Positions 40,661-64,000 of a stretch of DNA of 64,000 bases are shown here, one piece after another. Source of the stretch: Macrostomum lignano (taxonomy: Eukaryota); NCBI GenBank assembly GCA_002269645.1, contig NIVC01000095.1:186001-250000 (forward strand), written 5' to 3'. The notes beneath the pieces are model-generated. The model did not search any database. It was given only the letters and a program-made list of their open reading frames with translations, and was not told the origin of the DNA. The translations under genes were made by a program, and so were the position numbers. How positions within the stretch are numbered: position 1 is the first letter of the stretch; every line of letters begins with the position of its first letter.

Positions 40661-43600
40661 ATGCAGCAGCAACAGACTCAGGCTGCCTGCAGCTCCGGCA
40701 GTGCTGGCAGCAGCAGCAGCAGCAGCAGCAGTGCAACATCCACCTCAGTAATGCGACACCACGCCAGACACGCTAAAGCAAAAACAGCACCAGTCACCAC
40801 TGAGGCTGGCCGCCCGCCGCATCCCAACGCTTACCAATGGTCCCGACTAGAGCGACTGTTAGAACGGCTACAACAGGAAGACGCAGGCATCTCTGTGCGC
40901 ACTGTTAAATCCTTTATGTCCTGTCAGCCGTCTTGCTTCACTGGGTCGGAGCTGTGCGGCTGGCTTCTGCGTAACACCGATGCAGAGGATGCTCAGGTTA
41001 GGGCATATCGAGTCTTATTGTCATTATTTTTCTCTAACAATCAATATTTTGAAACTTGCACTTGTCGATATATTGATATCCTCATTTTCTACCCTCTGTC
41101 TTCTGACTCGGCCTTTTTTATTTTGTCTCCGTTCTCCCTCTTAACTCCCCGGCATTCTCTCTCACTCCAAGTCACTTCTTCTCACTCCCTCTCACTCTCG
41201 CTTCCTCTCCCTTCACCACCCTTCCCCTCACTTCCTCTCACTCTCCGTCACTCCCTCTCGCTTCCTCTCACCCCCTCTCGCTTCCTCTCACTCCCTCTCA
41301 CTCTCCGTCACTCCCTCTCGCTTCCTCTCACTCCCTCTCACTCTTGCTTCCTCTCACTCCCTCTCACTCTCCGTCACTCCCTCTCGCTTCCTTTCACTCC
41401 CTCTCGCTTCCTCTCACTCTCTCTCACTCTCGCTTCCTCGCACTCCCTCTCACTCTCGCTTCCTCTCATTCCCTCTCACTCTCGCTTCCTCTCACTCTCT
41501 CACTCTCGCTTCCTCGCACTCCCTCTCACTCTCCGTCACTCCCTCTCGCTTCCTCTCACTCACTCTCGCTTCCTCTCACTCCCTCTCGCTTCCTCTCACT
41601 CCCTCTCACTCTCGCTTCCTCTCACTCTCTCACTCTCGCTTCCTCTCACTCTCGCTTCCTCTCACTCCCTCTCACTCTCGCTTCCTCTCACTCTCTCACT
41701 CTCGCTTCCTCTCACTCTCTCACTCTCGCTTCCTCTCACTCTCGCTTCCTCTCACTCCCTCTCACTCTCGCTTCCTCTCACTCTCTCACTCTCGCTTCCT
41801 CTCACTCTCGCTTCCTCTCACTCTCTCACTCTCGCTTCCTCTCACTTGGAGACAGTAGTAGTAGTGGCAGTAGTAGCAGTAGTAGTAGTATTAGTAGCAG
41901 TAGTAGTAGTGCTAGTAGTGTACTATTAGCAGTAGTACTTGGACTATTAGTAGTAATATTTGTTGTAGTTTTAGTAATATTAGTGTTGGTAGTGCCTTGG
42001 GCTAGGTAGGTAGTGCTACTACCAGTAGCAGCAGTCAATTTGCTAAACACATGCGAGCTACTGGCTAACTAATGACTCTCCGATCCGACCATTACCGCAG
42101 GAGGCCTGTCACGTGGCCAGCATGCTGGCAGCTCACGGTTACATCATCCCAGTCGAAGGCACGGCTCTGGTTGTACGCAACGATTCTTCCTATTATCGAT
42201 TTCAAACGCCCTGTCTGTGGCCCAGTAAATCACCAGATCGGCTGGACAACACTGACTATGCTGTCTACCTGTGCAAGCGAACACTGCTCAATAAGCAGCG
42301 ATTGGAATTGGCCAATTATGAGGCTGAGAATTTGGCCAGGCTGCAGCGCCTACTGTCTCACAAATGGGAGTTTATCTACCTGCAGGCGGAGGCCGAGGCT
42401 AAGGTTGATAGGTAAAGCTGATTTCAACTTTATTTTTGTTACAATGGATCTTTTGGATTGTAGAATTACCAAGCTCTATCATCTTAGTTCCACGTAAATG
42501 AGGCCAAATTATTGGGCCACCGCTACCCTCCCAGACCCAAGGCTCAGCCACCACCCTCCCAGACCCCAGGCTCAGCCACCGCCCTCCCAGACCCAAGGCT
42601 CAGCCACCGCCCTCCCAGACCCCAGGCTCAGCCACCGCCCTCCCAGACCCCAGGCTCAGCCATCGCCCTCCCAGACCCCAGGCTCAGCCATCGCCCTCCC
42701 AGACCCCAGGCTCAGCCACCGCCCTTCCAGGCTTAGCCACCACCATCCCAGACCCCAGGCTCAGCCACCGCCCTCCCAGACCCCAGGCTCAGCCACCACC
42801 ATCCCAGACCCCAGGCTCAGCCACCGCCCTCCCAGACCCCAGGCCCAGCCACCGCCCTCCCAGACCCCAGGCTCAGCCACCGCCCTCCCAGACCCCAGGC
42901 TCAGCCACCGCCCTCCCAGACCCCAGGCTCATCCACCGCCCTCCCAGACCCCAGGCTCATCCACCGCCCTCCCAGACCCCAGGCTCAGCCACCGCCCTCC
43001 CAGACCCCAGGCTCAGCCACCGCCCTCCCAGACCCCAGGCTCAGCCACCGCCCTCCCAGACCCCAGGCTCAGCCACCGCCCTCCCAGACCCCAGGCTCAT
43101 CCACCGCCCTCCCAGACCCCAGGCTCATCCACCGCCCTCCCAGACCCCAGGCTCATCCACCGCCCTCCCAGACCCCAGGCTCAGCCACCGCCCTCCCAGA
43201 CCCCAGGCTCAGCCACCGCCCTCCCAGACCCCAGGCTCAGCCACCGCCCTCCCAGACCCCAGGCTCAGCCACCGCCCTCCCAGACCCCAGGCTCATCCAC
43301 CGCCCTCCCAGACCCCAGGCTCATCCACCGCCCTCCCAGACCCCAGGCTCAGCCACCGCCCTCCCAGACCCCAGGCTCATCCACCGCCCTCCCAGACCCC
43401 AGGCTCAGCCACCGCCCTCCCAGACCCCAGGCTCATCCACCGCCCTCCCAGACCCCAGGCTCATCCACCGCCCTCCCAGACCCCAGGCTCAGCCACCGCC
43501 CTCCCAGACCCCAGGCTCAGCCACCGCCCTCCCAGACCCCAGGCTCAGCCACCGCCCTCCCAGACCCCAGGCTCATCCACCGCCCTCCCAGACCCCAGGC

Positions 43601-44876
43601 TCATCCACCGCCCTCCCAGACCCCAGGCTCATCCACCGCCCTCCCAGACCCCAGGCTCAGCCACCGCCCTCCCAGACCCCAGGCTCAGCCACCGCCCTCC
43701 CAGACCCCAGGCTCAGCCACCGCCCTCCCAGACCCCAGGCTCATCCACCGCCCTCCCAGACCCCAGGCTCATCCACCGCCCTCCCAGACCCCAGGCTCAG
43801 CCACCGCCCTCCCAGACCCCAGGCTCAGCCACCGCCCTCCCAGACCCAGGTGCAGCAGCCACTCAGCTTACATTATCAGTAGTTGCGCCTCCAGCTGCTC
43901 AATATGCAGACATCAGAGGCAAATTCGCACCCAGTTGAGCTCTGATATTGACAGCAGTTCTCACAGTGTCGCATCGGAGTTGGCAGTTTGGGTTGCAAGA
44001 GAGACAGCGGCGCCTCTGCGCTTATCATGGGCCCGCAGTCCGGAACAATGGACCGGCCCGTTAGTCACGCAGCGGACAGCTTTGAAAATAATTTTCTAAT
44101 TCCTAAATACACTGATACATAAAATTGTTCTGTGTATTTACGGGTAGCAGCTGTGCTTTTAGTGCCCTCTGTTCTGCTTACGAGCGGTCTGTAAATTTTT
44201 CAGACACTACAACAGACACTACCAGACACTACCACAGACACTACCAGACACTACCACAGACACTACCACAGGCACTACCAGACACTACCACAGGCACTAC
44301 AACATACACTACCACAGGCACTACAACATACACTACCACAGACACTACAGCAGACACTACCACAGGCACTACAACAGACACTACAACAGACACTACCAGA
44401 CACTACCAGACACTACCACAGACACTACCAGACACTACCACAGACACAACCACAGACACTACAACGGATACTGCAAAAGACACCACCACAGACACGCTAA
44501 TTAATCATTCTATCCGCCACTCTCAACCTGTGCAGGAAGCTGGAACGGCTCGAGCGCATGGTGCTGGAGAGTCAGGAGCGCGGCTTCTGGCTGCTCTACA
44601 GGCCGCCGCCTGGCGCAGTCGTGGCCACGGAGGTCGACATGCGCAAGCTGTGCCGGGCTAAACGGCCAAAGAAGGTGGCCACCAGGCCCGCCACCTTCCC
44701 CATACCGAGCGGCCGGCTCAGTCCCGTGGAGCCGTGTGAGCCAGCCGCGAAGGCTGACAAACTGCGGCAGGCACTGGCTAGGCGGTGAGTTAGTCTCAGG
44801 TGACAGACCGGCTGACAGACAGACACTAAGACAGACAGACAGACAGCCAGACAGACACTAAGACAGACAGACACTA

Positions 44877-44949
<73 letters not shown>

Positions 44950-45793
44950 CACTAAGACAGACAGACAGACACTAAGACACTAAGACAGTGAGGCCCAGTT
45001 CGTATACCAGAAATGAGGCAATTGCGGCACCGATTCCAAACGCCCGCCCCCTCTCAGTCGCGTGAAAGTGTCCAAAGCGGCCGAGAGCGCCATATGCTAC
45101 TATCAGCAGTATGCCGAATTTGACGCATTCATTGGCGGCGGCCTGCCCGACCAGAGCCAGAATCCGTGGGTATCGGACAGCGCCGACTATTGGGAATCTG
45201 AGCGTCGAACCCGGGACGTCCCGGCTAGGCGGGTGAAGCGCTGGGGCTTCAGCATTCACGAGCTGCTGCGCGACCCGGCCGGCCGGCAGGAATTCGAGAA
45301 ATGGCTACTAAAAGAGGTTAGCGCCGAGAATTTGGCCTTCTGGGAGGCCTGCCAACGGTTGCGCCACGCCCCGGCCAGTCAGGTACACAAGGAGGTCAAT
45401 CGGATCTACGACACCTTCCTTGGACCGGACGCTACGGAGCCGGTCAACGTGGCCGGCCCGGTGGCCGAAGCTGTCCGAAAACGGATGTCCAGCGCTACAG
45501 CCGCCTCAGCTGATCGTTACGCATTCGAAGCGGCCGAGGAGCACATATTTCAGCTGATGAAGTCCGACTCCTACGGCAGATTCCTTCGTTCAGACTTCTA
45601 CCGGCAATTGTTAGCAAGTGGTAAGAAAAAATTAAGCAGCAAAAAGCAGCAACGATTGTCTAGTAGCGACGCGGCGACCAACGCCGTTAACGTCAACACG
45701 GCGTCCGCTGCGGCCGCCAGACGATCGAGGGACGCTGGAACTGTCGACGCCGTAACAATTCCCGGGGCCGAAGGGACCGACGCCGCAAATTAA
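40661..45793 (+). CDS. RGS7: R7-family regulator of G-protein signalling (DEP-DHEX-GGL-RGS), RGS6/RGS7/EGL-10-like
   Basis: Exons 40661-40996, 42101-42411, 44536-44784 and 45058-45793 (543 aa, phases consistent). GISVRTVKSFMS..FTGSEL; AAHGY..YRFQTPCLWPS..TDYAVYLCKRTL; ESQERGFW; GGL (VSKAAES..NPWVSDS); RVKRWGFSIHELLRDPAGR..ENLAFW..LMKSDSYGRFLRS. Confidence 0.95.
41150..42030. repeat. CT-rich low-complexity repeat followed by a degenerate (AGT)n tract, RGS intron 1
   Basis: ctctcactctcgcttc-type units to ~41845, then agtagtagc/agtagtagt. Confidence 0.92.
42520..43850. repeat. 28-bp C-rich minisatellite, RGS intron 2
   Basis: About 47 copies of (g/t)ccaccgccctcccagaccccaggctca; explains the 533-aa Pro-rich ORF. 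Confidence 0.97.
44203..44495. repeat. gacactacca(ca) short tandem repeat, RGS intron 2
   Basis: 10-12-bp degenerate units. Confidence 0.9.
44805..44990. repeat. (GACA)n microsatellite, RGS intron 3
   Basis: Tetranucleotide run with gacactaa interruptions. Confidence 0.95.
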
Positions 45794-46049: not shown

Positions 46050-46440
46050 TATGACCTCAAGTCGCAGATCCCCAACTCAAAAGTCCCAGATCTCCAACTC
46101 AAATAATCCCAAATCCCCAACTCTAAGAATCCCAGATTTCCAACTCAAAAAGTCCAGATCCCCAACTCAAAAAGTCCAGATCCCCAACCCAAACAGCCCC
46201 AGATCCCCAACTTAAAAAGTCCCAAATCCCCAACTCAAAAAGTCCCAGATCCCCAGCTCAAGAAGTCCATATCCCCAACTCAAAAAGTCCCAGATCCCCA
46301 ACCCAAACAGCCCCAGATCCCCAACTTAAAAAGTCCCAAATCCCCAACTCAAAAAGTCCCAGATCCCCAGCTCAAGAAGTCCATATCCCCAACTCAAAAA
46401 GTCCCAGATCCCCACTTCCAAATCAGATCCCAAAGATTCC
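46050..46440. repeat. ~22-bp minisatellite
   Basis: agatccccaactcaaaaagtcc variants. Confidence 0.88.
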
Positions 46441-46999
46441 AAATCTGGGCAAGTATTCTAAACGAGTCATTAGCACTTTCTTTTTCAAAACTCTAAAGAC
46501 TAAAACTATATCTAAGACTAAATATCGATATATTGGTCGTTAGTTTTACAGCGATAATCTAGATTAACTGTCATAACGTTTCATATTGTGATAAAAGTCT
46601 TTTAAGTACACATCCAATGTACTTATTATGCCCTCCGACGCCCAATGCCCTGTTTTGGTCTATGCAAATCATTATGCTTCTGAGAGTATGTAGTGATTTC
46701 CTAATCGTTTAGTTAGCTAATTGCATGCACTCTATTAATTTGAATTCGTTTCATTTTGCTTGAAGCATGCCATTGTATAATGGCCTAACCTTCAGCCTTT
46801 TGTATTTTGTATACATTTTGTTTAAATAGTCACCTGATACTTGTTTATCTAGTCGATTTTTTCTACTTTTTTTTCAGTTTTTGCAACAAACAACTAAACA
46901 AACACACAGGTCGCATTATTTTTGTATTTAATTATTATTTTGCTCGGGTCGCGTTAAATCCGTTGTGGGAGAGGGGATTAACGAAGCGTAAATTCTGTG

Positions 47000-47552
47000 G
47001 ATTAACCTGTGTGGAAATCCAACGGATTAACCTGTGGAAATCCAGCGGAATAACCTGTGGAAATCCTGCGGATTAACCTGTGTGGAAATCCAGCGGAATA
47101 ACCTGTGGAAATCCAGCGGATTAACCTGTGGAAATCCAGCGGATTAACCTGTGGAAATCCTGCGGATTAACCTGCGGAAATCCTGCGGATTAACCTGTGT
47201 GGAAATCCTGCGGATTAACCTGTGTGGAAATCCTGCGGTCTGCGGATTAACCTGTGTGAAAAATCCAGCGGATTAACCTGTGTGGAAATCCTGCGGTCTG
47301 CGGATTAACCTGTGTGAAAAATCCAGCGGATTAACCTGTGTGGAAATCCTGCGAATTAACCTGTGGAAATCCAGCGGATTAACCTGTGGAAATCCTGCGG
47401 ATTAACCTGTGTGGAAATCCAGCGGATTAACCTGTGGAAATCCTGCGGATTAACCTGTGTGGAAATCCAGCGGATTAACCTGTGGAAATCCAGCGGATTA
47501 ACCTGTGCGGAAATCCAGCGGATTAACCTGTGCGGAAATCCAGCGGATTAAC
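47000..47552. repeat. 21-23-bp minisatellite
   Basis: ggattaacctgt(gt)ggaaatcc(a/t)gc. Confidence 0.92.
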
Positions 47553-48084
47553 CACTTTTCGCTTAATATTTAAACAGATTGAATGTAAAAAGCGTTCATA
47601 AAGTGTCTTCTGCATATTTTCCTGATTATTGAATATCATCATCATCGCTTTAGCATCGGTGTATTTTGAGTTGATTTTATTTCACAAAACAGTTACTCAT
47701 TGCAAGTTGCGAGTATTTTCAACTCCCAGAGCTTTGCGGGGCAAGTTTTATAAATGCAAATTTAGATATATTATATCATTTAAAGCATATCTAATCCACA
47801 TTAACTTCTAGTCTGAATGCATCCAGTTTAGTATTTCTTATAAGTGTTGATATTTATTATATATATATTTATTTATTTAAAGCTAACTTCTTAGTCAATT
47901 GGTCCAAGTCATTTTTAATGTTAGCCTTGTGTTTGCTTTGCTTAAATACCTGAAAATTGTGAATTCACGGATTTCTGCAAATGGATCAGCGCACCCCTTC
48001 CTTTGAAGTCATTTAATAAATGTCACAATTTAAAAGTACACGTATATTTGTCTACTAGTTTTTCTGTTACCTATGATGTAGAGT

Positions 48085-48915
48085 TAGTTGGTCATAGATT
48101 CTAGAATGTGTGTACAGCTAGTTGGTCATAGATTCTGGAATGTGTGTACAGCTAGTTGGTCATAGATTCTGGAATGTGTGTACAGTTATTTGGTCATAGA
48201 TTCTGGAATGTGTGTACAGCTAGTTGGTCATAGGTTCTAGAATGTGTGTACAGCTAGTTGGTCATAGATTCTAGAATGTGTGTACAGTTAGTTGGTCATA
48301 GGTTCTAGAATGTGTGTACAGCTAGTTGGTCATAGATTCAGGAATGTGTGTAGTTGGTCATAGATTAGATTCTAGAATATGTGTACAGTTAGTTGGTCAT
48401 AGGTTCTAGAATGTGTGTACAGCTAGTTGGTCATAGGTTCTAGAATGTGTGTACAGTTAGTTGGTCATAGATTCAGGAATGTGTGTAGTTGGTCATAGAT
48501 TCAGGAATGTGTGTAGTTGGTCATAGATTCAGGAATGTGTGTAGTTGGTCATAGATTAGATTCTAGAATATGTGTACAGTTAGTTGGTCATAGGTTCTAG
48601 AATGTGTGTACAGCTAGTTGGTCATAGGTTCTAGAATGTGTGTACAGCTAGTTGGTCATAGATTCCAGAATGTGTGTACAGCTAGTTGGTCATAGGTTCT
48701 AGAATGTGTGTACAGTTAGTTGATCATAGGTTCTGGAATGTGTACAGTTAGTTGGTCATAGATTCTAGAATGTGTGTACAGCTAGTTGGTCATAGGTTCT
48801 GGAATGTGTGTACATTTAGTTGGTCATAGGTTCTAGAATGTGTGTACATTTAGTTGGTCATAGGTTCTGGAATGTGTGTACAGCTAGTTGGTCATAGATA
48901 TTAGAATGTGTGCAC
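48085..48915. repeat. ~34-bp minisatellite upstream of LIG1
   Basis: tagttggtcatag(a/g)ttctagaatgtgtgtacagc. Confidence 0.93.
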
Positions 48916-49029
48916 ATTTGGTGTAAAAAGTACATTGTTAATGGGAGAAAAAGTGTAAAGTAAAGTAATTGGTGTAAAGTAATTGCTTTATATTATCATG
49001 AAAATCTTAAACGTAACGCGGCACATTTC

Positions 49030-52000
49030 ATGCTACCTCGTTTATTAACGTTACTAGCGCCATCCTTAATACGTCAGAAAGGTGTGTCGGCTGTTTTCCT
49101 TCATTGCTCAAGCCCATTGTTTGTACGAAAACCGTCAATACTATCTATCTTAAACTCGCCCTGCGCAATGCCGCAACAGCAAAATGGAGGCCAGAAGCAG
49201 CAACAACGTTCCATCACTTCTTTCTTCTCGAAAACTGCCGCGTCTTCTGCGGCACAGTCAGATAGTAGTACTATTATCACCGATAGTACTCGACGCCCTT
49301 TATCGACCACACCGCCAACAAAGACTACTACCGACGCGAAGGTGAAGTCGCTGACTTCGAAAGCGGAGGCTTCGACGACAATTAAGAAAGAAAATAAATT
49401 GTCTTTAGATTGGCCAGATAAACAAGACAAGCGGAACAAGCGAAAGAAGGCTGAGTCTGAGTCCGGTTCCTCTGATTCTGAATCCAACGATGAGTCTTTG
49501 TCGTCGCCTCAGCAACAACAGGATTCTCCATCTCCGCCTGCCAAGCGTCGCCGAATGATTTCCTCCTCGTCATCTTCGGAATCTGCCGCTTCCGAATCTG
49601 CTTCCGATAAAAGCAAATCTAAATTGAAACCGAAACCGTCGAAATCTGACACAAAACCGAAATCTGACGCAAAACCGAAATCTGACACAAAACCGAAATC
49701 TGACACAAAACCGAAATCTGACACAAAACCGAAATCTGACACAAAACCGAAATCTGACACAAAACCGAAATCTGACACAAAACCGAAATCTGACGCAAAA
49801 CCAAAAGTAGCCAGGAAAAAATCTGCCACAAGTAAGCCGGAAAAGAAGCAGGCAAACAAAATCGCCGCCGAGGTAAAAGAGGTTGAAAAATCGGACCAGG
49901 AGAAGAAGACAGCAGCTGAAGCGCCGTCTGAGCAGCAGCCGAAGGAAGAATCGGGTTATAATCCCGGCAAAGCTCGCTACGATCCCATAGAGGATGCGAG
50001 CTGGTCGAGCGGCCAGCCGGTGCCCTACTTGGCTCTGGCCAAAACATTCGAAGCCATCGAGGCCACGCCTGGCCGGTTAAGAATCTTAGAGTTGCTATGC
50101 AATTTTCTTCGTTCAGTTCGTCTGCTCAGCCCTAAAGATTTGCTGCCGTGCGTCTATCTGTGCTTGAATCAGTTGGCGCCAGCTTACGAGGCTGTTGAAC
50201 TGGGCGTCGGTGACTCCGTGCTGATAAAAGCCATGGCTTTGAGCACCGGCTCTACCGTAGATAAAATTCGCCAACGTGCTCAAGTTGTCGGCGATCTTGG
50301 CGCAGTGAGCGAGTCGCTACGTTCGCGTCAAGCTGTGATGTGCCAGCCGAAACCTCTGACTGTTGCCGGCGTATTTCAGCGGCTACGCGAGGTGGCCGAT
50401 CTCTCTGGGAATGCCGCGCAGCAGAAGAAGGTGCTTAACACCTACCAGTAACTTTGATAGCTAATTATCTACTTGTGGTATCCATCGTAGCTAATCATCT
50501 ACCTGTGGTATCTATATGGTAGCTAATTACGAGTATCTACCTGTGGTATCCATCGTAGCTAATCATCTACCTGTGGTATCCATCGTAGCTAATTATCTAC
50601 CTGTGATATCTTTGGTAGCTAATTACTCAGCTGTGGTATCTATGGTAGCTAATTATCTACCTGTGGTATCTATGGTAGCTAATTATCTACCTGTGGTATC
50701 TTTGGTAGCTATTTACTCAGCTGTGGTATCTATGGTAGCTAATTATCTACCTGTGGTATCTTTGGTAGCTAATTACTCATCTGTGGTATCTTTGGTAGCT
50801 AATTACTCATCTGTGGTATCTTTGGTAGCTAATTACTCAGCTGTGGTATCTAATGTAGGCTCACAGCTAGTAATAGAGTTGACTATTTGTGGTGGTTAAT
50901 TGTCACATCAAAGTTTCTTACAAAACCCGCAGGTGTCAAAAATTCAATCCCTGCTAGTCTCCTGTCGCCAGTGCGAAGCCAAATACCTCATCCGATCTTT
51001 GTCCGGTCGTCTCAGAATCGGCCTGGCCGAGCTCTCCGTCCTGTCCGCTCTCGGCCATGCTTTTGTCCGGTCGCCGAATTTGAAAACTCCGGACGCTTCG
51101 CGTGGACAATCTGCGGATTCTTGGAAACGACGCCAAGACGAAGCGGCTCTGCTAGTGCGGACCGCCTACTGCCGCTGCCCCAATTATGACTTGCTGGTTG
51201 CCGCTCTGCTTGAGGAGACTCGGGATGAAGACTGGTGAGCCTGTTTAAGGCATTTGAATTCTTAGACGTTAAAACAGAATTCTTAGAAAGCGGGACTATT
51301 GGTTTAAGAAGTTTCTGTGGAGGGTCTAATGGATGAGATCTTGGAAAACAATTAAACCGTTTCTTAGAAAACAAAAGTACAGTAGTGGTTTCTTAGAAAA
51401 CGGGAAGTGGATTCTAAAAAAACATGAAGTGGTTTCTTAGCAAACGGAAAGTGGATTCTTAGAAAACGGGAAGTGGTTTATTAGAAAACGGGAAGTGGAT
51501 TCTTAGAAAACGGAAAGTGGTTTATTAGAAAACGGGAAGTGGTTTATTAGAAAACGGGAACTGGATTCTTAGAAAACGGGAAGTGGTTTATTAAAAAACG
51601 GGAAGTGGATTCTTAGAAAACGGAAAGTGGTTTATTAGAAAACGGGAAGTGGATTCTTAGAAAACGGAAAGTGGTTTATTAAAAAACGGGAAGTGGATTC
51701 TTAGAAAACGGAAAGTGGTTTATTAGAAAACGGAAAGTGGATTCTTAGAAAACGGAAAGTGGTTTATTAGAAAACGGGAAGTGGATTCTTAGAAAACGGG
51801 AAGTGGATTCTTAGAAAACGGGAAGTGGATTCTTAGAAAACGGGAAGTGGTTTATTAGAAAACGGAAAGTGGATTCTTAGAAAACGGGAAGTGGATTCTT
51901 AGAAAACAGGAAGAGGTTTATTAGAAAATGGGAAGTGGATTCTTAGAAAACGAGAAGTGGTTTATAAGACAATAGGAAGTGGATTCTTAGAAAACGAGAA

Positions 52001-52737
52001 GTGGATTCTTAGAAAACAGGAAGATGTTTATTAGAAAATGGGAAGTGGTTTCTTAGAAAAAGAATTTTTAATTAATTAAAATAATTCTTGAAAATTTAAC
52101 GTATTGCGTTCTCAGAAAACAAGTTTATTACTATCGGCAAAGCTACGAGAGCCACCTGGTTTTCCATAACAATTTTTTATTGTTAAAAAACGTAGAAAAG
52201 ATGAAATTGATTTGCCAATTTGATCTTGTTTCGATCAATAACAATGCTCGAACTCCATACTCGACCCCCTGCAGCTCCGGCGACTTGTCCGGCCTTCTGT
52301 CTCGCTGTCAGCTTCAAGTCGGCCTGCCCCTCAAGCCCATGCTGGCCCATCCAACCCGCGGCGTCGCAGAGGTGCTCAAACGATTCGAAAGCGTCGGCGC
52401 CTTCACCTGCGAGTTCAAATACGACGGCGAGCGCGCTCAGATTCACCGTCTGTCAGACGGCTCCGTTCGGGTGTACTCGCGCAATCAGGAGAACAACACC
52501 AGCAAGTACCCGGACATCGCCGCCAGGGTGCCCGACCTGCTGGCTGGCCGTCAGCCGGTTGACTTCATATTGGATGCTGAAGCTGTGGCCTTCGATACGG
52601 AGAAGCGACAGATACTGCCTTTCCAGGTGAGCTGGACAGACAGACAGACAGACAGGCAGGCAGACAGACAGAAAGACGGATAGGCAGACAGACAGACAGA
52701 CAGACAGGCAGGCAGACAGACAGAAAGACGGATAGGC

Positions 52738-52796
<59 letters not shown>

Positions 52797-52849
52797 TAGG
52801 CAGGCAGACAGACAGACAGACAGACAGACAGACAGGCAGGCAGGCAGGC

Positions 52850-52890
<41 letters not shown>

Positions 52891-52933
52891 GGCAGGCAGG
52901 CAGGCAGACAGACAGACAGACAGACAGATAGGC

Positions 52934-52966
<33 letters not shown>

Positions 52967-54707
52967 GCACGCAATCGCACACACTCTCACAGGGTGCACA
53001 GTGACCCTGACTTTCGTGGCGCTACATAACTAGCTAATAACGGTTTTAACTTTAGAAACTCCACCTTCTGCACCTCCCCCCCCCCCAGGTGCTAACAACC
53101 CGGAAGCGAAAAGACGCTGACGCGGGCTCAATCAAAGTCCAGGTGTGCGTGTTCGTGTTCGACATTCTGTACTACAACGGCGAGTCGCTGGTTGAGAAAT
53201 CATTAAGGCAGCGACGCCAAGTTCTGCGCGATGGGTTCAACTTTGCCGAGACAGAGCAGGCGGGTCACTTTGCCCTGGCCAAGTGGCAGGACTGCTCCGA
53301 CACCGAGGAGATTCAGGTCTTCCTGGATGAAGCTATTCGAGGAAACTGCGAAGGACTCATGCTTAAAGCCTTGGACACTGAGGCTACCTACGAGATTGCT
53401 AAGAGGTGCGCGCACAGTATCATGTGTCTACCTTGTCTACCGTGTCACCTGTCTACCTTGTCTACCGTGTCACCTGTCTACCTTGTCTACCGTGTCACCT
53501 GTCTACCTTGTCTACCGTGTCACCTGTCTACTTTGTCTACCGTGTCACCTGTCTACCTTGTCTACCGTGTCACCTGTCTACCTTGTCTACCGTGTCACCT
53601 GTCTACCTTGTCTACCGTGTCACCTGTCTACCTTGTCTACCGTGTCACCTGTCTACCTTGTCACCTGTCTATCTGATCTTACCTATCTACCTTGTCTACT
53701 TCTCACCTGTCTACCTTGTCTACTTCTCACCTGTCTACCTTGTCTACTTCTCACCTGTCTACCTTGTCTACCGTGTCACCTGTCTACCTTGTCTACCGTG
53801 TCACCTGTCTACCTTGTCACCTGTCTATCTGATCTTACCTATCTACCTTGTCTACTTCTCACCTGTCTACCTTGTCTACCTTGTCTACTTGTCACCTGTA
53901 TAACTTGTCTACTTCCAATATACTAAAAATGAGTTGTCAGCATATGTATGTACATCTATCTTATTTACCTGATCTACTACGAGCTCATCTATCTACCGTA
54001 TCCACTTCTTACGCTTGTATCAGATTTTAAACTGCTTTTCCTATCACGCATACTGGCAGTAATATTCCTAGACACAAAGCTCTTCATCCTACTCACGCGA
54101 ACTTTATCTAATAAGTAGTCTAATAAGCAAATCAATCAATTAATTTAACGCGCGCAGGTCGCACAGCTGGCTGAAGCTCAAAAAAGACTACGTCGACGGT
54201 GTTGGCGACACGCTCGACCTCGTGGTTGTCGGTGGTTACCATGGCACCGGGAAGCGGGCCGGCAAGCTTGGGGGCTTCCTGTTGGCCTGCTACAATCCCG
54301 ACGACGAAGAATACCAGACCGTCTGCAAAATCGGCACCGGCTTCTCCGACGAAGATCTGGACGCGTTCACCCGCGACCTGGCCGAGCACCGGGTCGCCGC
54401 GCCGAAGCCCTACGTCCGCTGCGGCGGCGCTTCAAATGCCGACGTCTGGTTCGACCCGGCCATCGTCTGGGAGGTGAAGGCGGCCGACCTGAGCCTCAGC
54501 CCCGCCTACATGGCCGCCATCGGCCTGGCCGACCCTCGCCGCGGCGTCAGCCTCCGATTCCCCAGATTCGTTCGCCGCCGCGAGGACAAACGGCCAGAGG
54601 AGGCGACTACGGCCGCCCAGCTGGCCGAGATGTACAGCAGCCAGGAGGTGGTCAAGTCTGCCGCTGCCACTGCCGGCGGTCAGAATGAGGATGAGGATTA
54701 TTACTGA
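49030..54707 (+). CDS. LIG1: DNA ligase 1
   Basis: Exons 49030-50430, 50933-51234, 52275-52626, 53089-53405 and 54158-54707 (973 aa from ATG1; 927 aa from ATG2 at 49168). PIP box QRSITSFF; [14 protein letters not shown]; [10 protein letters not shown]; [10 protein letters not shown]; [13 protein letters not shown] (KxDG); EGLMLKAL; [12 protein letters not shown]; [16 protein letters not shown]. Confidence 0.98.
50455..50855. repeat. ~30-bp minisatellite, LIG1 intron 1
   Basis: ggtagctaatta(tcta/ctca)cctgtggtatct(a/t)t. Confidence 0.9.
51385..52060. repeat. ~22-bp minisatellite, LIG1 intron 2
   Basis: ttagaaaacgggaagtgg(attc/ttta). Confidence 0.92.
52635..52968. repeat. (GACA)n microsatellite, LIG1 intron 3
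   Basis: Starts 8 nt after the donor site. Confidence 0.97.
53425..53900. repeat. 25-bp minisatellite, LIG1 intron 4
   Basis: ctaccttgtctaccgtgtcacctgt. Confidence 0.93.
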
Positions 54708-54744: not shown

Positions 54745-55270
54745 CGAGTCTACTTCTCAATCTCATGAGTCTACTTCTCAATCTCATGAGTCTACTTCTC
54801 AATCTCATGAGTCTACTTCTCAATCTCATGAGTCTACTTCTCAATTTCACAAGTCTACTTCTCAATGTCATTCGTTCCGAGTCTACTTCTCAATCTCATG
54901 AGTCTCTTCCCAATCTCACGAGTCTACTTCTCAATTTAATGAGTTCCGAGTCTACTTCTCAATCTCATGAGTCTCTTCTCAATCTCACGAGTCTACTTCT
55001 CAATTTAATGAGTTCCGAGTCTACTTCTCAATGTCATGAGTTCCGAGTCTACTTCTCAATGTCATGAGTTCCGAGTCTACTTCTCAATTTTATGAGTTCC
55101 GAGTCTACTTCTCAATTTAATGAGTTCAGAGTCTACTTTTCAATCTCGTGAGTCTACTTCTCAATCTCACGAGTTCCGAGTCTACTTCTCAATCTCACGA
55201 GTTCCGAGTCTACTTCTCAATCTCACGAGTTCTGAGTCTACTTCTCAATCTCGTGAGTTCCGAGTCTACA
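54745..55270. repeat. ~21-28-bp minisatellite in the LIG1 3' region
   Basis: gagtctacttctcaatctcat and gagttcc-extended variants. Confidence 0.9.
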
Positions 55271-63500: not shown

Positions 63501-64000
63501 CCCTCTGTTCATCAACCCTCAGTTTATCAAGCATCAATAGCCAGTCTTATGAAAAATTCAGCTAAAACAAATAATTGAAATACTTGAACTAATTCTGAAC
63601 TCACCAGAAAGATATTCCCATATCGAGCCTGAGCCCTGGCCCTCCTGAGCTCATCGTGGCGGGCCAGCAGCTCTTCCACAGCACCCGGTCGCTCCGTGTC
63701 AAACAGTCTGGCCTCCACAGCCTCTTTACTGACGCCAGACAGTCGGAAATTTAAATCGCCAAAGAAAAAAGTCACGTGACTTCCAACCGCGTCGCCAACG
63801 TGACTAAGCAGTTCGTAGCGACCAGCCGTGCCCTCAAACATCAGCTTTAGTTTCTGTTGAATATCGCGAAAATCGTTGTAGCGATTCTCCAGCTTATCTT
63901 CACCGGCTGCCAGGTGGCAGTTCACAAAGGTGAACTGAGTATCGCCCAGTTGAAATCGGACCGCGGTGCCGCCTTTGTTAGGACCGAAACCCATCAGACC
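59359..64000 (-). CDS. OCRL: Inositol polyphosphate 5-phosphatase, OCRL/INPP5B type (5-phosphatase, ASH, RhoGAP-like); 5' part outside window
   Basis: Exons >64000-63605, 62641-62276, 60933-60510 and 59885-59359 (phases consistent). [17 protein letters not shown]; [10 protein letters not shown]; [25 protein letters not shown]; ASH ([29 protein letters not shown]); RhoGAP-like ([26 protein letters not shown]). No C-terminal CaaX, which favours OCRL over INPP5B. Confidence 0.92.
60022..60502. repeat. (GTCT/GTGT)n microsatellite in an OCRL intron (GACA on the sense strand)
   Basis: Starts right after the donor gtgagt on the minus strand. Confidence 0.97.
61010..62225. repeat. 38-bp minisatellite in an OCRL intron
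   Basis: About 31 copies of gattagttcacacctgtgtagcttatctaattaccctt. Confidence 0.97.
62790..63530. repeat. 15-bp minisatellite in an OCRL intron
   Basis: cctcagtttatcaac units. Confidence 0.96.

Follow-up and report, generated by a model that had tools for sequence, protein, structure and literature searches.

An upstream in-frame start codon in LIG1 (DNA ligase I) from the flatworm Macrostomum lignano and its possible part in a dual-targeted, nuclear and mitochondrial ligase

The supply of one DNA ligase to two compartments from a single gene has been described in yeast and in plants. In Saccharomyces cerevisiae, Willer et al. reportedly showed in 1999 that initiation at one or the other of two in-frame AUGs of CDC9 gives a nuclear and a mitochondrial form, and Sunderland et al. 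are said to have found in 2006 that the nuclear and mitochondrial targeting of LIG1 from Arabidopsis thaliana depends on context-dependent leaky scanning. Outside vertebrates, the ligase that acts on mitochondrial DNA has, to our knowledge, been identified in few organisms. Yeast has no LIG3 and uses the mitochondrial form of its LIG1 homologue, and in vertebrates it is LIG3 that carries a first ATG, used in about 10% of the initiation events, which adds a mitochondrial targeting sequence (MTS) to the protein (PMC4488670). Cells that would die from a Lig3 knockout survive if they overexpress yeast CDC9 or carry an MTS-tagged E. coli ligase and, therefore, diverse ligases can serve once they are inside mitochondria (PMC4488670).

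The LIG1 gene of Macrostomum lignano, studied here in a stretch of 64,000 nucleotides (the window), can be compared with each of these systems. Like CDC9, it is a LIG1 orthologue with a short, basic and acid-free extension before the Met that stands ahead of the PIP box and of the nuclear localisation signal (NLS), which is putative in M. lignano, and what holds for CDC9, namely that a single gene supplies both compartments, is proposed for M. lignano LIG1 as well. The two differ in the length of the extension, which is 46 aa in M. lignano versus about 23 aa in yeast. Like LIG1 from Arabidopsis, it has an upstream AUG in poor context and a better downstream AUG, with none between them. The upstream-ATG device is also that of vertebrate LIG3, although the latter is a different paralogue, whose N-terminal PARP-like zinc finger (zf-PARP) and, in the alpha form, C-terminal BRCT domain are missing in the M. 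lignano gene. Furthermore, the import and function of CDC9 have been shown experimentally and the mechanism of Arabidopsis LIG1 has been tested by context mutation, whereas LIG1 from M. lignano and the other flatworms is known here from sequence alone. The gene and its two starts are laid out as follows (positions are those of the window):

49030..50430, plus strand: LIG1 exon 1, with the extension, the PIP box, a disordered linker and the first part of the DNA-binding domain
49030..49032, plus strand: ATG1, the upstream in-frame start (catttcATGc; weak context, T at -3, C at +4)
49030..49167, plus strand: 46-codon N-terminal extension, a putative mitochondrial presequence
49168..49170, plus strand: ATG2, start of the presumed nuclear form (tgcgcaATGc; G at -3)
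49204..49227, plus strand: PIP box QRSITSFF (PCNA-binding motif)
49429..49449, plus strand: basic cluster KRNKRKK, a putative nuclear localisation signal (by composition only)
49543-49554, plus strand: second basic cluster KRRR, NLS-like (by composition only)
50933..51234, plus strand: LIG1 exon 2, with GT-AG borders
52275..52626, plus strand: LIG1 exon 3, with the active-site motif KYDGER
53089..53405, plus strand: LIG1 exon 4
54158..54707, plus strand: LIG1 exon 5, stop codon included

The gene comprises five exons with GT-AG borders, which code for 973 aa when read from ATG1 and for 927 aa when read from ATG2. Its product contains the Pfam domains DNA_ligase_A_N, DNA_ligase_A_M and DNA_ligase_A_C and has human LIG1 as its top match among solved structures (5e-231, versus 1e-43 for LIG3 and 1e-34 for LIG4), and the gene is a true LIG1 orthologue without LIG3 features. 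Its identity as a LIG3-type mitochondrial ligase was considered and rejected, given that the Pfam search of the product returned no match to zf-PARP or BRCT and that the catalytic core matches LIG1. Exon 1 shows 98% identity to a Macrostomum lignano UniProt entry, and a comparison of the N-terminal 142 aa with the protein collection gave no match (36 candidates shared words with it and none of them scored).

ATG1 and ATG2 are 138 nt apart, in the same frame and both within exon 1. An in-frame stop codon (TAA, 48961-48963) is located 22 codons 5' of ATG1, which is the first in-frame ATG after it, and the 135 nt between both starts contain no ATG in any of the frames. An earlier note on this DNA had claimed two in-frame starts, at 49030 with T at -3 and at 49168 with G at -3, and a PIP box QRSITSFF after the second one; coordinates and contexts were confirmed, and the PIP box was located at 49204-49227. 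The combination of a weak context at ATG1, a better one at ATG2 and an ATG-free stretch in between is a putative signature of leaky scanning. The recount of the peptide also bore out the note, which had described 46 aa with five Arg/Lys, no acidic residues and many Leu and Ser: there are 3 R, 2 K, no D/E, 10 L, 7 S and 5 P, which is a presequence-type composition (net positive, non-acidic and rich in Leu, Ser and Arg). The hydrophobic moment at the N-terminus of the extension is 0.33 in an 18-residue window and 0.47 in an 11-residue window, indicating moderate amphipathicity, and no clear R-2 or R-3 cleavage motif could be assigned in the extension. Residues 5-14, flanked by Arg, have a mean Kyte-Doolittle value of 2.2, a hydrophobicity that matches the core of a signal peptide.

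The explanation that we prefer, with a confidence slightly better than even, is that alternative initiation allows this one gene to give rise to two ligases, one mitochondrial and the other nuclear. Ribosomes starting at ATG1 would produce a 973-aa precursor, whose 46-residue basic, acid-free N-terminus would act as a presequence and take ligase I to the mitochondria, where it may participate in the replication and repair of mtDNA. In other initiation events ATG1 would be skipped owing to its poor context (T at -3), probably aided by a very short leader or, as an alternative to skipping, some transcripts may begin between ATG1 and ATG2, and the start at ATG2 would then give the 927-aa nuclear, PCNA-binding form. 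That ATG1 is part of the mRNA, that ribosomes use it, that the peptide is imported and cleaved and that the ligase serves mtDNA maintenance are inferred steps.

Most of the argument comes from other species. LIG1 shows the same one-exon, two-start layout in Echinococcus granulosus (34-aa extension; L001), Paragonimus (49 aa; L003), Calicophoron daubneyi (49 aa; L004) and the nematode Trichinella papuae (31 aa; L007), with extensions that contain no or one acidic residue, along with 3-9 basic ones, and are mutually dissimilar in sequence. Together with M. lignano, five of five species have T at -3 of ATG1 and an inter-ATG stretch free of ATG, and the product of the no-ATG shuffle probabilities over four flatworms is 2e-4. 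A basic, acid-poor extension is present too in LIG1 from Hymenolepis microstoma (judged on the N-terminus of the protein model only). None of these extensions (Echinococcus, Hymenolepis, Paragonimus, Calicophoron and Trichinella) can be aligned with the M. lignano peptide. The query for harvesting flatworm LIG1 sequences was a probe joined from P0039 (N-terminus) and P0007 (rest), which was used for harvesting only. The extensions from the other flatworms and Trichinella are database predictions, and we know of no discussion of them in the literature. The two-start LIG1 layout, previously known from yeast and plants, is here found, as predicted from gene sequences, in flatworms and Trichinella, and its recurrence with unrelated extensions that are nonetheless basic and acid-poor speaks for a functional signal at the N-terminus, of the type of CDC9 and Arabidopsis LIG1.

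The feature is not universal in flatworms, since schistosome LIG1 lacks ATG1: the schistosome models begin at the PIP-box Met, and the 44-codon open stretch 5' of MSQKSIL in S. japonicum contains no ATG. The possibility that the AUG of a spliced leader provides the upstream start in S. japonicum was considered and rejected, because no codon of that stretch ends in AG and an in-frame acceptor is therefore impossible. The dual-targeted LIG1 that the earlier note had proposed is supported in part: it gains from the two-start layout, the leaky-scanning features and their recurrence in cestode, trematode and nematode LIG1, but not as a trait of all flatworms.

The comparison between species is biased towards extensions, since the models of species other than M. 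lignano tend to adopt the longest ORF. In a set of 98 LIG1 models from animals, all with a PIP-box Met, 77 begin at that Met and have the PIP motif at their N-terminus, and 15 of the 18 whose extension is at least 26 aa long have at most one acidic residue in the first 20. MTS-like extensions are also seen in the models of bivalves, starfish, one bryozoan and two frogs. Regarding transcripts, a flatworm one from Logan (L005) begins 45 nt 5' of its PIP-box Met and is frameshifted, and because of this reach and the frameshift it is uninformative on an upstream ATG. An arthropod-like Logan transcript (L006) has an MTS-like ATG1 inside the RNA, with two out-of-frame ATGs preceding ATG2, which makes it a poor fit to simple leaky scanning.

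How much of the M. lignano pattern could have arisen by chance? Of the dinucleotide shuffles of the 135-nt inter-ATG stretch, 8.5% left the frame open; 2.6% were open, without D/E and with at least 5 K/R, and 0.6% were ATG-free in addition, with a looser rule giving 1.4%. The probability of zero ATGs between the starts was 0.20 in these shuffles. Among the real ATGs elsewhere in the window (n=1588), 1.3% pass the test of an open frame, no D/E and at least 5 K/R. Base composition accounts for part of the lack of D/E, which 46% of the shuffles share. Frame 3 of the inter-ATG stretch is open as well and, given this and the rates of about 1-3% in shuffles and real ATGs, the pattern in this single sequence is unusual, yet not compelling. 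The coding-versus-non-coding score of the extension is -14.8 bits, versus +37.8 +/- 12.8 in windows of coding sequence, and its GC3 is 0.37 versus 0.63 for coding sequence, although GC3 is also low in the first coding windows 3' of ATG2 (0.43-0.54) and is 0.37 or lower in 6% of the coding windows. Codon usage and GC3 of the extension are thus non-coding-like, which leans slightly against coding.

The region upstream of the gene bears on whether ATG1 belongs to the mRNA, and it contains the following elements:

48077..48916, no strand assigned: minisatellite with a 34-bp unit, ending 113 nt 5' of ATG1
48989..48995, plus strand: TATA-like element TATATTA, with no other such element in the 113 nt of unique sequence 5' of ATG1
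48998..49048, plus strand: upstream ORF, out of frame, with A at -3, overlapping ATG1
49172..49179, plus strand: possible trans-splice acceptor gcaacag, with the exon start at 49180, in frame; no YTNCAG match

The room for a unique promoter is limited, because the minisatellite ends 113 nt before ATG1. If TATATTA were the promoter element, transcription would start near 49020 and leave a leader of about 5-12 nt. A scan for E2F sites as a guide to the location of the promoter gave nothing useful. The upstream ORF is relevant only if transcription begins 5' of 48998. The spliced leader (SL) of M. lignano, CGGTCTCTTACTGCGAAGACTCAATTTATTGCATG, ends in ATG and is joined at acceptors with the motif YTNCAG; about 30% of the genes are SL trans-spliced, with an enrichment for conserved and stem-cell (neoblast) genes (PMC8629364). 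From 48880 to 49260 there is no YTNCAG acceptor. Apart from the CAG acceptor that leads to 49180, a second in-frame one would place the exon start at 49078, likewise without a YTNCAG match, and the pyrimidine tracts of both are mediocre. An SL joined at 49180 would bring its own AUG, in frame, as a start shortly ahead of the PIP box.

These observations also leave room for other explanations, of which the one that deserves most attention, in our view rather unlikely, is that ATG1 lies outside the mature mRNA, either because transcription starts 3' of 49030 or because the SL is joined 3' of ATG1, in such a way that the extension would be promoter or outron DNA that is open by chance. This would account for the resemblance of its codon usage and GC3 to non-coding DNA and for the open frame 3, and it is in line with a 30% share of trans-spliced genes enriched for conserved and neoblast ones and with in-frame CAG acceptors that would place the exon start at 49078 and 49180; moreover, a single-locus chance of about 1-3% is not negligible when many genes are scanned. 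However, neither acceptor has the YTNCAG motif or more than a mediocre pyrimidine tract, the 113 nt of unique DNA 5' of ATG1 with their TATA-like box suggest a start just before ATG1, and chance does not predict the recurrence, in four other lineages, of an extension that is open, basic and free of ATG and whose own start has T at -3. If ATG1 were indeed outside the mRNA, the finding would come down to an ordinary upstream ATG.

A more improbable alternative is that ATG1 is in the mRNA and sometimes used, with an extension that is neutral, fortuitous and devoid of a targeting function, or with ATG1 dampening translation from ATG2, and that another enzyme (e.g., LIG3, if present) ligates in mitochondria. 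The merely moderate amphipathicity, a codon usage without sign of coding constraint and the similar LIG1 extensions of frogs (which have LIG3) and of bivalves and starfish (for which LIG3 is assumed), where an extension need not make LIG1 the mitochondrial ligase, speak for it, but a neutral extension should carry the usual acidic share, while those of independent lineages are repeatedly basic and acid-poor, and it would not keep the inter-ATG stretch free of ATG. The extension might also sort the protein to a place other than the mitochondria, as an ER signal peptide or a membrane anchor would, and the Arg-flanked residues 5-14, with their Kyte-Doolittle value of 2.2, do look like the n and h regions of a signal peptide. 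Nonetheless, we are aware of no rationale for a secreted or ER-resident replicative DNA ligase, the further basic residues R33 and K34 and the Ser/Pro-rich tail suit a presequence, and the CDC9 presequence from yeast has a similar hydrophobic start, which makes this last explanation highly improbable.

Frogs, as vertebrates, have LIG3, and its presence in bivalves, starfish and the bryozoan is an assumption; since frogs with LIG3 show MTS-like LIG1 extensions too, the extension alone does not imply the loss of LIG3 that the earlier note had tentatively suggested. In the literature searched for LIG3 in flatworms (including Schistosoma, planarians and Macrostomum) only one indirect statement was found: LIG3 is reported, at second hand, to be missing from Schmidtea mediterranea (PMC6114478). 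A broader reading, which draws on the MTS-like extensions before the PIP-box Met in flatworms, Trichinella, bivalves, starfish and a bryozoan, is that dual LIG1 forms made by leaky scanning, far from being peculiar to yeast and plants, are ancestral and still widespread in invertebrates, that in much of Metazoa the role of a mitochondrial ligase falls to LIG1 and not to LIG3, and that flatworms rely on LIG1 alone. In this reading, the ratio of the two forms in M. lignano might also be tuned by the upstream ORF overlapping ATG1, or by trans-splicing at 49180, with the nuclear form starting at the AUG of the SL. We put it forward tentatively, as a possibility that may well turn out otherwise.

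Why do vertebrate mitochondria use LIG3, and why did LIG1 lose its mitochondrial duty in evolution? These questions have been raised in a review (PMC4488670), and the CDC9-like second start in M. lignano, with its counterparts in cestodes, trematodes and a nematode, suggests that in many animals this task has stayed with LIG1. Transgenesis and RNAi are established in M. lignano, and the dual-ligase idea is therefore directly testable in this organism. For parasitic flatworms, a single ligase serving both nucleus and mitochondria would, if true, be a point of vulnerability.

The LIG1 gene model, built by tblastn with homologues and subsequent inspection of the junctions, has five GT-AG exons and gives a product of 973 aa from the first in-frame start (ATG1) or 927 aa from the second (ATG2), in which the three ATP-dependent ligase domains and no others were found; this protein matches structures of human LIG1 at 5e-231, as against 1e-43 for LIG3 and 1e-34 for LIG4. 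The coordinates that the earlier note gave for both ATGs, their shared frame and the 46-codon extension between them proved exact on re-reading the window. Since an in-frame stop lies 22 codons 5' of ATG1, at 48961-48963, ATG1 is the earliest possible AUG of the LIG1 frame.

LIG1 and its surroundings in the window (coordinates, strand where assigned, feature)
40661-45793, forward: R7-family RGS gene, upstream neighbour of LIG1 (DEP, DHEX, GGL and RGS domains)
46059-46414, 46990-47553, 48077-48916: tandem repeats in the LIG1 5' flank
48998-49048, forward: out-of-frame upstream ORF of 16 codons overlapping ATG1, A at -3
49030, forward: ATG1, context catttcATGc, T at -3
49168, forward: ATG2, context tgcgcaATGc, in frame with ATG1
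49204-49227, forward: PIP box (PCNA-binding motif) QRSITSFF, 11 residues after ATG2
49030-50430, 50933-51234, 52275-52626, 53089-53405, 54158-54707, forward: LIG1 exons
50458-50852, 51384-52060, 52635-52967, 53425-53912, 54746-55269: tandem repeats in the LIG1 introns and 3' flank
63527-63994, reverse: inositol-5-phosphatase-like ORF (Exo_endo_phos2), downstream of LIG1

The LIG1 exons are islands amid tandem-repeat DNA, all introns and both flanks being full of mini- and microsatellites with periods from 4 to about 160 bp, (GACA)n among them. The 3.2-kb gap from the RGS gene is mostly minisatellite and leaves only 113 nt of unique DNA immediately 5' of ATG1; the RGS gene itself has, in introns or exons, low-complexity repeats of great length that are rich in GC and strongly skewed (65% GC at 42-44 kb). 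Within LIG1 exon 1, an 18-nt tandem repeat (49640-49806; 9.3 copies, 97% matches) gives (KPKSDT/A)n in the disordered segment that joins the putative nuclear localisation signal (NLS) to the DNA-binding domain. This exon is 98% identical to the shortened public M. lignano model, UniProt A0A1I8HIP1, which, compared with 49030-49815, is devoid of the whole N-terminus (both ATGs, PIP box and NLS) and also omits exon 3 (52275-52626), the bearer of the active-site motif KYDGER; due to these two absences, it is a defective gene model. From the exon-1 match, the window would derive from this free-living flatworm or a very close copy.

The extension has a moderate hydrophobic moment (0.33 over 18 residues, 0.47 over 11) and fairly hydrophobic residues 5-14, and two basic clusters resembling nuclear localisation signals lie 3' of the PIP box. 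When the 135 nt separating ATG1 from ATG2 were shuffled with dinucleotides preserved, the frame stayed open in 8.5% of shuffles, was open without D/E and with at least 5 K/R in 2.6%, and additionally contained no ATG in 0.6%, while 1.3% of 1588 other real ATGs in the window passed the open, acid-free and basic test. Base composition accounts for part of the lack of acidic residues, since 46% of shuffles also lack D/E, and frame 3 of the stretch is likewise open; at this single locus, the two-start pattern is thus only moderately beyond chance. A codon-usage score trained on the remainder of the gene gave the extension -14.8 bits (mean of coding windows +37.8, of non-coding windows -38.5), and its GC3 is 0.37 versus 0.63 for the LIG1 coding sequence. 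GC3 is low (0.43-0.54) in the first windows past ATG2 as well, and 6% of coding windows have a GC3 no higher than that of the extension, so that this test speaks weakly, and not decisively, against the extension being coding.

Several flatworm LIG1 proteins have an N-terminal extension ahead of the Met preceding the PIP box (the PIP-box Met, ATG2 in M. lignano); annotators favour the longest ORF, which biases gene models towards extensions.

LIG1 N-termini in harvested flatworm proteins
Paragonimus skrjabini miyazakii: MINRFRPFLRLRLGSVAVSLSVATNLSFVARKLRVSKYSIKLAQQSSVV-MSQKSIAFFF
P. westermani: extension like that of P. skrjabini miyazakii
Calicophoron daubneyi: extension of 49 aa
Echinococcus granulosus: MLVGHLTPICSLSFCIARLFRVSSSRSAVFLCNS-MPQRSIQSYF
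Hymenolepis microstoma: MFLGRLRPVCSLSPYILQSC...

All these extensions are basic, with 0-1 acidic residues. Genomic DNA was checked for E. granulosus, Paragonimus, Calicophoron and the nematode Trichinella papuae, and in these four and M. lignano the extension and the PIP-box Met share a single exon and frame, ATG1 has T at -3 (5/5), and no ATG in any frame lies between the starts (5/5); at -3 of ATG2, the five species have G, T, G, A and A (G in M. lignano). The shuffle probabilities of lacking an inter-start ATG are 0.20, 0.045, 0.10 and 0.23 in the four flatworms (product 2e-4). Leaky scanning requires a weak first AUG, a second one that can be used and none in between, and the recurrence of these features across species is the strongest support for the predicted dual start. 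None of the flatworm extensions could be aligned with the M. lignano peptide. The schistosomes lack ATG1, their models beginning at MSQKSILSFF. In S. japonicum (locus L002, 1869-2000), the frame 5' of MSQKSIL is open for 44 basic, acid-free codons (FNLASSRSLFAPSLVFLFSNYRGFLFKTFVSRTYFYRLRYNTYL), with neither an ATG nor a possible in-frame trans-splice acceptor among them; this could be what is left of an extension since lost, a stretch read from a non-AUG start, or an effect of T-rich composition. A convergent STIL gene follows LIG1 in three trematodes (3' ends of L002-L004: S. japonicum, Paragonimus and Calicophoron), an arrangement that the trematodes have conserved but that the window does not show.

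More widely, among 98 animal LIG1 models starting with Met and having the PIP box near a Met, the first residue is the PIP-box Met in 77, and 21 have an upstream extension. At most one acidic residue occurs among the first 20 positions in 15 of the 18 extensions of at least 26 aa. These belong to the flatworms, Trichinella, a bryozoan, three bivalves, three starfish, two frogs and an arthropod-like Logan transcript. Either an extension 5' of the PIP-box Met or an alternative N-terminus, resembling a mitochondrial targeting sequence (MTS), is present in the models P0031, P0077, P0079, P0086, P0087, P0091, P0092, P0094, P0117, P0142 and P0143 and in the bee isoforms P0120 and P0146; besides bees, these cover Trichinella, the bryozoan, bivalves, starfish, the arthropod-like transcript and the two frogs. 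In the arthropod-like transcript, the MTS-like ATG1 is present in RNA, but two out-of-frame ATGs intervene between the starts, which is at odds with simple leaky scanning. The contig of this transcript opens (L006, 1-38) with TTTGGCGCC, which is a perfect E2F-type site and lies 30 nt 5' of its ATG1; a scan around the flatworm LIG1 starts turned up nothing comparable.

Yeast CDC9 and Arabidopsis LIG1 are dual-start ligases and the model for a mitochondrial long and a nuclear short form. Beyond the sequence layout, we infer every step of the mechanism: the long form, from ATG1, would enter mitochondria by import, and the short form, from ATG2, would go to the nucleus, either because some ribosomes bypass the weak ATG1 (leaky scanning), aided if a TATA-like box at 48989 sets the transcription start at about 49020 (a leader of only some 5-12 nt), or because some transcripts begin between the two ATGs. 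Vertebrate LIG3, together with CDC9 and Arabidopsis LIG1, would be an analogue of this split. About 10% of initiation events on LIG3 occur at the first ATG, adding a targeting sequence; in yeast, a form of the LIG1 homologue serves in mitochondria, and loss of Lig3 is rescued by ligases from diverse sources if they are able to enter mitochondria (PMC4488670).

Trans-splicing could produce a different outcome. About 30% of M. lignano genes, with conserved and stem-cell genes enriched among them, are trans-spliced to a 35-nt spliced leader (SL) ending in ATG, and the published acceptor motif is YTNCAG (PMC8629364). No YTNCAG lies near the LIG1 start; plain CAG acceptors 3' of ATG1 would begin the exon at 49078 or 49180, both in frame with LIG1. 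As the leader ends in AUG, a junction at 49078 could leave a shortened extension, and one at 49180 could remove both genomic ATGs, the leader AUG then starting the nuclear form. The 16-codon upstream ORF is relevant if transcription starts 5' of 48998, and overlapping upstream ORFs or ATGs also occur elsewhere.

Overlapping upstream ORFs and ATGs in other species
L001 2970-3098: ORF in E. granulosus, ending 5 nt ahead of ATG2
L003 253-264: out-of-frame ATG opening a short ORF in Paragonimus
L007 1497-1535: out-of-frame ATG opening a short ORF in Trichinella

ATGaATGa is common to the latter two. These ORFs could be a shared damper of ATG1 that feeds re-initiation at ATG2, or chance. A CDC9-like dual-start LIG1 is the best reading and slightly more likely than not, mainly because the design recurs in other flatworms and a nematode; this lends partial support to the interpretation put forward in the earlier note.

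As for LIG3, the Dugesia japonica genome paper (PMC6114478) places it among the genes reported by Grohme et al. as missing from Schmidtea mediterranea and mentions a match in D. japonica; the literature searched yielded nothing on flatworm LIG3 beyond that paper's sentence. Frogs, being vertebrates, have LIG3, and since frogs are among the animals with the extension, a LIG1 extension is no sign of LIG3 loss. Bivalves and starfish are also assumed to have LIG3. If true, the dual-start LIG1 of M. lignano would be a further, so far purely predicted, case of a known dual-targeting arrangement, and it would matter more if the broad pattern holds and LIG1 is a mitochondrial ligase in many invertebrates.
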